Source: Chara braunii
Taxonomy: Eukaryota > Plantae > Charophyceae
Length of the DNA stretch: 64,000 nucleotides
Direction of reading: 5' to 3'
Assembly: GCA_003427395.1 (NCBI GenBank)
Contig: BFEA01000045.1
Location: 3,995,619-4,059,618, forward strand
Below the pieces are notes generated by a model, which worked only from the letters and a program-made list of their open reading frames with translations, was not told where the DNA came from and made no database searches. Of this stretch, positions 1 to 19,981 are shown in pieces (the stretch's first letter is position 1; each line of letters begins with the position of its first letter). The position numbers and the translations under genes were made by a program.

Positions 1-79
1 GGAGGGGTGGGCATCGTATGATAGCCAATAATATAATACGGGTTCGCTAACTGCTTCGTCACGCAGTGTCGTCGACCTC

Positions 80-775
80 TTGGCCTTCGCAGCAGACTGT
101 ATTCGCCACTGTAAGGAAACCGTAGATGAGTACGGTCTCTGTGATGAGGGTGTTGCGATTGCTAAGGATGACCTTCCTCGCAATATGACGTCTCTGTTGA
201 ACAGTTGCTTGGACGTCATTGATGCCCTGCAACACACACGAGGTAGGTTGTTGGATGGAGAAATGACGGTGACTTGTGCGAACGAAGTTGTCATGGGAAG
301 TGCAGAAGGTGAAAGGACCAAGGCAGGTGAAGAAATCGACACAACAATGCAAACCTCCACAGGAATTGGGACCACTGTCGGGGACTGCGCGCCTGCGATG
401 CATGCCCTGCTGGCGTGCACCGATGTTGCCGCACTGAATTGTCACCACATTCGTCACAACTTCCCATGTGTCGTCGCTAGCAAAGCACCTTGTGCTGATG
501 CAGAATTTGTTGCTCTGCCTATGACGACGGACACATTTCAAAAGTTCGTTGCAAAAGCGAATTCGCGACAAATGGCGAGGCTGGTTGCGGACTGTCTGTT
601 CCATCTCATATCGTACATCAAAGAGATAATGGTACAGGTCGTAACAAACGCAGGCCAGCATGGGGGGAATAACGAATGTCAGCATTGCAAGAAAGGACTT
701 CACATTAACGACCGCTTAAAAACTCTCTACACAAGATGTCAAATCGTGGCTGCGCGGGTGGTCAGGGACGCGTGA
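80..775 (+). CDS. Cargo ORF1, hypothetical protein (probably begins upstream)
   Basis: 231-aa open frame with protein-like composition. Its stop codon abuts a (TC)n tract. Weak resemblance to the 9829-11387 ORF. Confidence 0.5.
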   Translation: MAFAADCIRHCKETVDEYGLCDEGVAIAKDDLPRNMTSLLNSCLDVIDALQHTRGRLLDGEMTVTCANEVVMGSAEGERTKAGEEIDTTMQTSTGIGTTVGDCAPAMHALLACTDVAALNCHHIRHNFPCVVASKAPCADAEFVALPMTTDTFQKFVAKANSRQMARLVADCLFHLISYIKEIMVQVVTNAGQHGGNNECQHCKKGLHINDRLKTLYTRCQIVAARVVRDA

Positions 776-1033
776 TCTCTCTCTCTCTCTCTCTCTCTCT
801 CTNNNNNNNNNNNNNNNNNNNNNNNNNNNNNNNNNNNNNNNNNNNNNNNNNNNNNNNNNNNNNNNNNNNNNNNNNNNNNNNNNNNNNNNNNNNNNNNNNN
901 NNNNNNNNNNNNNNNNNNNNNNNNNNNNNNNNNNNNNNNNNNNNNNNNNNNNNNNNNNNNNNNNNNNNNNNNNNNNNNNNNNNNNNNNNNNNNNNNNNNN
1001 NNNNNNNNNNNNNNNNNNNNNNNNNNNGCGTGA

Positions 1034-1117
<84 letters not shown>

Positions 1118-1211
1118 TTATGTATGTTTATTGTTGCCTGTATTACAACTTCTTCGTCCACACTTTTCTATCTATAATGTTCGCTGCCTTTGTCCATATT
1201 GACATACTTGT

Positions 1212-2414
1212 GGTTCACTACTGCGAGCCATACCAGTGTCCACCGCTGCTGTTTGTTGTCGTTCTGGCCCGCAGTAGTGAACCGCTCTCTGTCGCTGCGT
1301 CTTTTCCTGTCCAACAACATAAGAGAGATGGTTAACAACAAACACTATTTACAGGTCACTTTCAGCCCCTTCAGGTCCCCACCTAAAACTCATGAAAGGA
1401 CCTGAAGTGGCTGAAGCTTCTGAATGGGGTTTTCGGTACCCCCATCCAACCATTTGGATGGGGGTACCGGAAACCCCATTCAGAAGCTTCAGCCACTTTA
1501 GCGGTTTCAGGTCCCCACCTGAAATTCCTGAAATGACCTGAAGTGGCTGAAGCTTCTGAAAGGGGTTTCGGGTACCTCATCGAAATGGTTGAATAGGGGT
1601 ACCTGGAACCCCTTTCAGAAGCTTCAACCACCTCAGCAGTTTCAGGTCCCCAACACCTGAAACTCCTGAAATGACCTGAAGTGGCTGAAAAAACAGACTG
1701 AAAACTTTGCGCCAATGTCTGTCTCGCATGAGATGTTTGTTGGAGTTCTGGCCTGCAGTAGTGAACCTCTCGTTAATGCTGCGTCTTTGTGTTTCCAACT
1801 ACTTGCGGTTCACTACTGCGTGCCATATCAGTGTCAACCGGTGCTGTTTGTTGTCGTTCTGGCCTGCAGTAGTGAACCGCTCTCTGTCGCTGCGTCTTTC
1901 CCTGTCCAACAGCATGAGGTTCACTACTGCGGACCAATGTCTGTCTCGCATGAGATGTTTGTTGGAGTTCTGGCCCGAGGTAGTGAACCTCTCGCTGGTG
2001 CTGCGTTTTTGCATTTCCAACTACTTGTGGTTCACTACTGCGTGCCATATCAGTGTCAACCGGTGCTGTTTGTTGTCGTTCTGGCCCACAGTAGTGAACC
2101 GCTCTCTGTCGCTGCGTCTTTCCCTGTCCAACACCATGAGGTTCACTACTGCGGGCCAATGTCTGTCTCGCATGAGATGTTTGTTGGAGTTCTGGCCCGC
2201 AGTAGTGACCTCTCTCTCTCTCACGCACACACACACACACACATACACAATTATGTGTGTTTAAGTGCTGCCTCTATTATTACTTTCTGCTTAGAGTAAG
2301 TTTATGTCCATAATGTTTGCTGCTTTTTGCCTGACGACACACAAGTGGTTCACTACTGCGTGCCTATCAGTGTCCACCGGTGCTGTTTGTTGTCCTTCTG
2401 GCCCGCACTAGTGA

Positions 2415-2417
<3 letters not shown>
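1212..2417. repeat. Array of 72-bp inverted-box units (111-bp monomer, 222-bp A/B dimer)
   Basis: Units GGTTCACTACTGCGtGCCA-N34-TGGCCcGCAGTAGTGAACC at 1212, 1709 (partial), 1807, 1918, 2029, 2140 and 2347, with 39-bp linkers. Confidence 0.9.
1325..1708. mobile_element. Fold-back repeat/MITE-like insertion in the box array
   Basis: Two long hairpins (CTGAAGTGGCTGAAGCTTCTGAA...TTCAGAAGCTTCAGCCACTT). It interrupts one unit of the 111-bp array. The same family recurs at 60703-61205. Confidence 0.65.
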
Positions 2418-18503: not shown

Positions 18504-18804
18504 NNNNNNNNNNNNNNNNNNNNNNNNNNNNNNNNNNNNNNNNNNNNNNNNNNNNNNNNNNNNNNNNNNNNNNNNNNNNNNNNNNNNNNNNNNNNNNNNN
18601 NNNNNNNNNNNNNNNNNNNNNNNNNNNNNNNNNNNNNNNNNNNNNNNNNNNNNNNNNNNNNNNNNNNNNNNNNNNNNNNNNNNNNNNNNNNNNNNNNNNN
18701 NNNNNNNNNNNNNNNNNNNNNNNNNNNNNNNNNNNNNNNNNNNNNNNNNNNNNNNNNNNNNNNNNNNNNNNNNNNNNNNNNNNNNNNNNNNNNNNNNNNN
18801 NNNN

Positions 18805-18872
<68 letters not shown>

Positions 18873-19027
18873 CTGAACCATGACACTTGAACAGTCACTT
18901 TACAACATATGGTCTGTTATTTATGATACACAATTGTACAATCCCTTGTAATGCTCATCTTTGTCTGATTGGTCATAGAGCGACTATGTTATGAAAAAAA
19001 CACCATCCGTGGTTTTCCTCAATGCAA

Positions 19028-19602
19028 GGTTGGCTAGTGCGTGTCACTCTCTCTCTCATGCCACCATGTTGTAAAATTTGTGTCACGCAGTAGTGAACCG
19101 TGCTTGTAGCAGGGCAGCTCAGCATTTACCTGAGGCTCCCTCACGCGTCCATCCATAGAATGAAGCACAGCAATCCTACGGACTCGAAAAAGAAGGTTGG
19201 TTAGTGCGTGCCACTCTCTCTCGCGGACGACCATGTTGGTAAATTTGTGGCCCGCAGTAGTCAACCGAGCTTATAGCAGAGCATCTCAACATTTAATTGA
19301 GGCTCCCACACGCGTCCGTCCATAGAATGAAGTACAACAATCCTACAGACTCGAAAAGGAAGGTTGGCTACTGCGTGCCACTCTCTCTCGCGGACTGCCA
19401 TGTTGGTAAATTTGTGTCATGCAGTAGTGAACCGTGCTTGTAGTAGGACAACTTAGCATTTAATCGATGCCCCCTCACTCGTCCGTCACCAAAATGAAAT
19501 ACCGCAATCCAGCACCAATCATGGTCCAAAGGTTGGTTACTGCGGGCCAATGTCTGTCTCGCACTGCCATGTTGGTGAATTTGTGTCACGCAGTAGTGAG
19601 CC
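19028..19602. repeat. Four ~167-bp tandem units, each with one inverted-box pair
   Basis: Units start at 19028, 19195, 19362 and 19531, each 72 bp with a 34-bp spacer. Confidence 0.85.
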
Positions 19603-19839
19603 CTGCTTGCAGCTCTCTCTCTCTTTTTTTTTTTTCTCTCTCTCTCTTTTTATCTTCAGTCATTGTGGTCGTTGCATGTGAGGAGTACTGAAAGACTCAA
19701 CGATTGACATTTGCGAAAGACCATAGCATATCGTGCAACAAGAGAAAATGACGGGAAGAAACCGCGAAAACCGACGACCTGAGCCAAAAATTTTGATATT
19801 TTCCCCCAACACAGAATGTAACATTCTACAAAAGTTAAA

Positions 19840-19981
19840 CACGTTTTCAACACGTTTCAACAAGTTTTCAACACGTTTCAACAAGTTCTCCACAAGTCTT
19901 CAACAAGTTGTCAACAAATGGTCAACAGATGGACGAACATCCTTTCAACAAATGGACACTCCAGTTTAAGTTTTCCCAATG
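19840..19981. repeat. 10-11-bp subterminal-type repeats and candidate right TIR
   Basis: Repeated TTTCAACA(CG/AG). The segment ends ...GTTTTCCCAATG, whose reverse complement CATTGGGAAAAC is one transition away from a CACTG start. Confidence 0.4.

Follow-up and report, generated by a model that had tools for sequence, protein, structure and literature searches.

Giant Plavaka transposons of 17–19 kb that carry chromatin-related accessory genes and inverted-repeat arrays are known from Bostrychia moritziana (bioRxiv 10.1101/2025.02.11.637652), and Plavaka has also been described in streptophyte algae. Here, we analyzed 64,000 nucleotides of the Chara braunii genome (assembly GCA_003427395.1, contig BFEA01000045.1, positions 3,995,619 to 4,059,618 of the forward strand), referred to below as the window; its positions 1–20126 are almost certainly most of one decayed Plavaka DNA transposon insertion, and one of the genes on board encodes a histone H3 fold. 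The Bostrychia and Chara elements are alike in their Plavaka transposase, in a fixed accessory gene set and in tandem inverted-repeat arrays beside an accessory gene (DNA-binding in Bostrychia), and in both the copies are mostly degenerate and expression is low. They differ in cargo: Bostrychia carries PAG1–3 (adenine methylase with SET; ParB-like with 2-oxoglutarate (2OG) oxygenase), whereas Chara carries an H3 fusion, a Ulp1 protease and three genes of no assigned family, and PAG-type domains were not detected in the Chara element genes. The passages on fungal PlavakaB in PMC12730594 describe C(2)C and H(3–4)H motifs, CA..TG ends and a 2-bp duplication, as found here; some of the families treated there carry TET/JBP, whereas no TET/JBP gene was found in the Chara element, and histone cargo is not mentioned in those passages.

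A divergent H3 gene (H3L), fully neither H3 nor CenH3, lies between the terminal repeats of a hAT DNA transposon in Pyrenophora tritici-repentis (PMC3538342). That element belongs to another superfamily, measures 5.6 kb and is present in 26 near-identical copies, with selection not shown there; its H3L stands alone and has a recognizable tail, whereas the Chara fold ends a fusion of about 800 residues, lacks tail motifs and has been under long-term purifying selection. The VANDAL elements of Arabidopsis are Mutator-like. Their VANC proteins bind non-coding tandem targets (PMC5735166), which resembles the logic proposed below, an element protein on repeated targets in the element's non-coding regions, with a presumed activity in Chara; similarity to VANC was neither found nor expected. 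CENH3/CENP-A histones also combine an H3 fold with a longer loop 1, no Q68 and an unrelated N-terminus; unlike them, the Chara fold keeps F84 and T118, sits in a protein of about 800 residues with a C-terminal extension and occurs in dozens of transposon-borne copies. The preliminary description of this DNA knew of no Plavaka family with histone cargo. That holds for the combination, on which we found no paper in the literature searched, most subscription journals and Repbase lying outside its scope, but not for the separate parts, as a fungal hAT with an H3-like gene and giant Plavaka with chromatin cargo are both published. The Chara element is thus a Plavaka member set apart by its cargo.

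The element's boundaries were established by comparison with twelve sister loci (L001–L012) from the same assembly. Sequence likeness to other loci stops at window position 20126, the last letter of the right end, a junction common to L002, L006, L007, L009, L011 and L012, each with an unrelated flank.
20102–20126, minus strand: right terminal inverted repeat of about 25 bp (5′ CAACAG...), followed by GG, the predicted 2-bp target duplication
Left ends, which are the reverse complement of the last ~25 bp, are present in six loci (L001, L003, L009–L012) at least 2.9 kb upstream of the first gene, A, so that inverted repeats of the form CAACAG..CTGTTG delimit seven right and six left ends. Each of the three copies holding both ends, all internally deleted, is flanked by a 2-bp target duplication (TA in L011, AC in L012, TT or TTT in L009). 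Estimated from L003 and L010, the left end of the window copy falls ~3.4 kb before position 1, giving a full element of ~23.5 kb; other copies, with long gaps in the left arm, may be longer. The extent of 1–19981 first proposed was therefore too short on both sides.

Assignment to Plavaka was borne out by the transposase.
12387–15102, plus strand: Plavaka transposase T, about 900 residues, with frameshifts at ~12437 and ~13246 and a stop at 13040
The Pfam Plavaka profile (PF18759) matches 13255–15099 of the window (E 6e-16) and, in a sister copy, is matched over positions 1–322 of 325 (E 1e-26). The protein possesses an N-terminal C2HC finger and a D..D..E triad with C(2)C and H(3)H motifs, and in the window as well as in sister copies the succession of motifs is YFDKT, DYPE, CPTC, HTIKH, WEHH; residue roles were assigned by analogy with PMC12730594. 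Together with the CA..TG ends and the 2-bp duplications of the sister copies, these features identify a DDE cut-and-paste element of the CMCT clade that multiplied in C. braunii as several subfamilies and of which the window copy is now dead. Compared by ends rather than by tree, the family (CAACA..TGTTG) differs from PlavakaB (CATCA..TGATG) at one of five positions. At least five subfamilies are represented among the examined loci, and the subfamilies share one set of six genes. Every close homologue of the cargo and transposase proteins is a gene model of Chara braunii.

The six genes, all on the plus strand, lie within 1–18506 in the order A, B, C, T, U, E, in agreement with the transposase and at least five further genes reported earlier.
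2–775, plus strand: gene A, 3′ part, the last ~258 of ~430 codons, with an in-frame stop at 29–31
2527 to ~4930, plus strand: gene B, about 800 residues, interrupted by three stops (2986, 3061, 3232) and by two deletions, of 7 nt at 4666 and of 1 nt at ~4903
4480–4765, plus strand: histone H3 fold within gene B, from αN to α3, frameshifted in α2 in the window copy
9828–11387, plus strand: gene C, 519 residues, fully open, with an acidic stretch
15830 to ~16252, plus strand: remnant U of a Ulp1 (peptidase C48) gene, with ~0.9 kb including the catalytic domain deleted at ~16178
16629–18506, plus strand: gene E, probably two exons (16629 to ~17406 and ~17610 to 18506), with a frameshift at ~17040 and several stops
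The same order on one strand recurs in all 43 annotation models that join pieces of neighboring genes, and more distant lineages also keep it. The H3 fusion is neither single-copy nor unlinked: 83 database proteins are relatives of B (62 of them named as C. braunii models) and are linked to the transposase, and 1226 contigs from one DNA run align to gene B. Third-position distances of B correlate with those of T (rho 0.97), A (0.96), E (0.95) and C (0.80), values that are descriptive only because the pairs are not independent. Common ends, target duplications, constant order and congruent gene divergence bear out the proposal that this is a single element, at least 20 kb long, whose fixed set of genes includes the H3 fold. 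Decay was earlier described as similar among the genes; it is uneven, C being fully open and B, T, U and E broken.

Gene B, of about 800 codons without an evident intron, encodes an acidic leader, an internally duplicated (E 1e-7) domain of ~450 residues found in Chara only, a basic linker, the H3 fold and ~55 charged C-terminal residues. The Pfam Histone family matches within 3235–4716 (E 2e-10), as the preliminary description had anticipated for one cargo gene, and the fold aligns with H3 chains at E ~1e-29, which makes it an H3-type histone fold. The residues matching H3 F67, V71, A91, L100, E105, N108, R116, V117 and D123 are invariant in 16 aligned copies, and at least 90% of them retain R83, H113, K115 and L126; relative to H3, R49, R63, K64, Q68, L109, C110 and R128 are changed, and loop 1 is three residues longer. 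In eight family proteins tested, we found no tail motifs for K4, K9, K27 or K36. With no such motifs and ~800 residues in place of ~135, B is not a canonical H3 or H3.3. The most divergent member, P0116 (CBR_g37046), has an H3 fold at residues 377–466 that is 34% identical to that of the window's subfamily, with a loop 1 of H3 length; this divergence suggests an old radiation and may help to trace the H3 donor.

Selection on the fold was queried through the ratio of nonsynonymous to synonymous substitution (dN/dS) among copies. Between subfamilies, the H3 fold yields 0.14–0.23 (bootstrap upper limits ≤0.45; synonymous distances 0.5–1.9), close to the transposase (0.07–0.38); A, C, U and the B N-terminus mostly give higher values (about 0.2–0.6), and the stretch of the fold, read out of frame, gives 1.0–1.9. 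The fold is retained in lineages separated by synonymous distances above 1.4. Within the window's subfamily, dN/dS is ~0.4–1, such values being given by decay after insertion. Because selection has acted on the fold, the H3-fold protein has, as judged from these substitution rates, been conserved and functional over the long term while the element was moving.

The genes are further tied together by one intergenic motif, a 72-bp inverted box composed of two 19-bp arms around a 34-bp spacer. In agreement with the preliminary description, which did not see the motif after 19.6 kb, 15 paired boxes of 71–73 bp lie between 1212 and 19602, and the remaining 44 kb of the window contain no 72-bp box pair.
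1212–2417, unstranded: array of six boxes immediately upstream of gene B, most of them at a spacing of 111 bp
5079–5150, unstranded: 72-bp box downstream of gene B, at the same position in L002 and L007
9355–9628, unstranded: two 72-bp boxes upstream of gene C
11531–11602, unstranded: 72-bp box upstream of the transposase
16223–16295, unstranded: box upstream of gene E, 73 bp in the window
19028–19602, unstranded: subterminal array of four boxes at 167–169-bp spacing
Before U, the window retains one arm only. Across the family, at least one box lies upstream of every gene and near both ends, and the largest array precedes B (5–7 boxes in L005, L006 and L010). In 13 sequences, the length is exactly 72 bp in 67 of 79 arm pairs and 71–73 bp in 75. 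The arms are conserved at most positions and the spacer is variable, apart from an A at position 31 (84%) and a T at 42 (97%), conserved symmetrically about the center. Arm variants combine freely, with no general compensatory change, so that binding of a protein to double-stranded DNA fits better than RNA pairing. An RNA hairpin is disfavored; covariation is clear only at 5/68 and 15/58, where relatedness can explain it.

Taken together, these data allow a model in which B is an accessory histone that acts on the element's own chromatin against silencing, a reading that we favor tentatively, at slightly under even odds. The modified H3, long kept in this Plavaka family, suggests possible self-repackaging of transposon DNA to escape silencing. 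B would pair with H4 through its intact H3 fold, and the partner would be the host's, because no H4 fold was found in the element's other genes. On the element itself, and most likely at the intergenic inverted boxes, it would then assemble nucleosomes or tetramers of a non-standard kind. Because B lacks the K4, K9, K27 and K36 motifs, the host would have no place on such chromatin for its repressive H3 marks, which would leave the promoters of the element usable, and the Ulp1 protease would assist by removing SUMO. The anti-silencing logic would be that of VANDAL/VANC, but made from a histone: known transposons carry chromatin enzymes and readers, whereas a histone fold selected as strongly as the transposase, without a modifiable tail and fused to a large novel domain, would supply the substrate rather than edit it. 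Both the protein and its candidate 72-bp site are defined, so that the proposal is open to testing in vitro. A stricter version, in which B is a sequence-directed histone, two B and H4 form a tetramer centered on a 72-bp box and the N-terminal domains read its two arms, is improbable; if true, the element would place its own mark-free chromatin at each promoter. A canonical H3–H4 tetramer holds about 70 bp (PMC9659345), and the match of the box to this length may be chance.

Four observations weigh against an anti-silencing histone: i) the element family is near silent in the two poly(A) runs sampled, with 14 reads in 8.9 M and 10 in 16.2 M at ≥80% likeness, mostly from other copies and mostly first mates on the minus strand, as sense transcripts give in a standard stranded library; ii) the B N-terminal domain has neither a homologue nor a usable model, and the protein that binds the boxes may be the transposase, A, C or E; iii) the ~650-residue N-terminus and the changes at 49, 63, 64, 109, 110 and 128 may block normal nucleosome formation; and iv) the window's subfamily may have spread without the Ulp1 catalytic domain, as the window and L002 appear to share one deletion junction (L012 has a larger loss). 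In favor of the model, transitions specific to the window copy amount to 8.0% at CG, 5.5% at CHG and 1.3% at A/T sites, a CG/CHG excess consistent with that expected for a methylated target.

Alternatively, B might act in trans as a decoy that soaks up host H4 or H3 chaperones, or that enters host chromatin broadly, in either case relaxing silencing irrespective of sequence, with the boxes bound by the transposase or E. We consider this doubtful, although the H4-binding core is kept with several DNA-contact residues changed, boxes also lie near both ends and conservation of the E C-terminal domain is similar to that of the transposase. TnpA binds the subterminal repeats of CACTA elements. However, a decoy with global effect would be harmful to the host and useful to competing elements, and the large N-terminal domain, needless for a plain decoy, is also selected (dN/dS 0.17–0.56).

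It is unlikely that B serves in targeting, with its H3 fold imitating CENH3 or a partner bound to chromatin so that the transpososome, or new copies, are guided to certain kinds of chromatin, for example centromeres. Loop 1 is longer and Q68 is lost, as in CENH3, fission-yeast Cnp1 ranks first or joint first among the PDB matches, and the automated labels in supplementary file 7 of a chromatin survey (10.1101/2021.11.30.470311) assign many of the Chara element proteins to H3_cenH3; "Plavaka" does not occur in the main text or in the examined supplements of that survey. CENH3 is recognized by the absence of the H3-specific Q69, F85 and T118 (PMC4359364), whereas the family shows two of four CENH3 features, the longer loop 1 and the replaced Q, and its F84 and T118 are H3-like. 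The family profile scores H3 and Cnp1 equally (104.2 vs 104.7 bits), numerous divergent H3s carry the H3_cenH3 label in that table, and the copies are spread over many scaffolds, with one close to an ordinary gene for a thioredoxin-domain protein. The same table contains GBG61392, which has a glycine-rich tail and looks like the true host CENH3; it is a better candidate than the element proteins (190 vs 78–123 bits), and the host seems to have a separate CENH3. The dozens of apparent cenH3 genes in the Chara annotation are explained as cargo of the transposon, a point to heed when histone variants are counted in studies of plant evolution.

Two further explanations fare worse. That a fragment of host H3 was captured once and carried along functionless, in the manner of Pack-MULE transduplication, is very improbable: every copy seen is damaged, expression is near zero and within-subfamily dN/dS approaches neutrality at its upper end (~0.4–1), but the between-subfamily ratios and the retention of the fold over long synonymous distances largely refute it. 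A pile of independent nested insertions or an endogenized virus fragment, for which four assembly gaps, one small nested repeat and rearranged copies such as L002 might be cited, can almost certainly be dismissed, as the genes lie within one pair of ends with three target duplications, constant order and congruent distances, the gaps are spanned elsewhere, and IMG/VR scans returned no viral relatives of the H3 fold.

The four gaps in the element part of the window (803–1027, 7597–7617, 8922–9096 and 18504–18804) were judged against gap-free sister copies, not reads, and interrupt no reading frame. The first lies beyond the A stop codon and has the same 33 nt on either side, at a (CT)n run, so that two contig ends probably overlap at this microsatellite; L005 and L010 are continuous there. 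The second and third fall inside a simple-repeat spacer that L008 covers gap-free, and the fourth starts at the E stop codon, where L005, L006, L008 and L009 show ~110–130 nt and then a (GA)n run. Continuity across the gaps in the window copy itself is thus inferred from its sisters.

Searches for the origin of the B N-terminal domain returned no relatives outside the Chara family in a profile search of 1.8 billion representatives; two bacterial matches were rejected as summed weak matches to tandem-95 repeats. AlphaFold models of this domain and of E exon 2 were unusable (predicted local distance difference test, pLDDT, 36 and 44), fold searches with them gave TM-scores of at most 0.33, and an ESM Atlas search with gene B gave no match. 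Metagenome and IMG/VR scans detected no relatives of the element, four metagenome matches being unrelated H3 variants. Separately, a 33-kb metagenome contig of 62% GC (L013) encodes at 2535–3044 an intronless divergent H3 with an altered tail and a C-terminal extension of ~30 residues; it is unrelated to the element and possibly viral.

Among the other cargo genes, A resembles a coiled coil at its N-terminus in sister copies, matches no Pfam family above the cut-off and has a dN/dS of 0.18–0.65 between subfamilies. Gene C (0.29–0.56) has no family found, an ESM Atlas lead to DUF6589 being weak (0.80, chance level). A and C, called ORF1 and ORF3 in the preliminary description, are not related, which rules them out as paralogues. 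What remains at 15.8 kb is the 5′ portion of a gene for a Ulp1 protease, whose peptidase C48 domain (~0.9 kb more) is present in L005, L006, L008 and L010 and absent from the window, L002 and L012; the catalytic His-Asp-Cys domain is therefore a property of the family and not of the window copy. Gene E, its two exons searched separately, has a basic/acidic low-complexity N-terminus and a conserved helical C-terminal domain (exon 2 dN/dS 0.14–0.26). Neither Pfam nor PDB gave a match to TET/JBP, SET-methylase or ParB-2OG in A, B, C, U or E, with remote folds possible given the poor models.

Two further non-coding features lie inside the element.
5150–9300, unstranded: spacer separating B from C, non-coding; two assembly gaps fall within its simple-repeat satellite (~6100–9140)
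1357–1690, unstranded: nested palindromic repeat inside the box array, not the element's own
The satellite is a higher-order array of (GTCT)n, (TG)n, (TTTC)n and a recurring ~35-bp unit, and is part of the element in L002, L007 and L008. A gene at 5247–5969 was rejected; this stretch is conserved in L008 but without a codon pattern. The palindromic repeat, which has no match in the fetched sister loci and recurs 59 kb away at 60700–61150, is probably a miniature element. Positions 3327–18596 of L002 are rearranged, window 20126 to 13729 (minus strand) being joined to window 3115 onwards (plus strand), as after an internal inversion. Beyond the right end, window 20284–21150 and 32492–32962, both on the minus strand, match parts of the Chara models P0095 and P0116 and are probably retroelement pieces outside the element.

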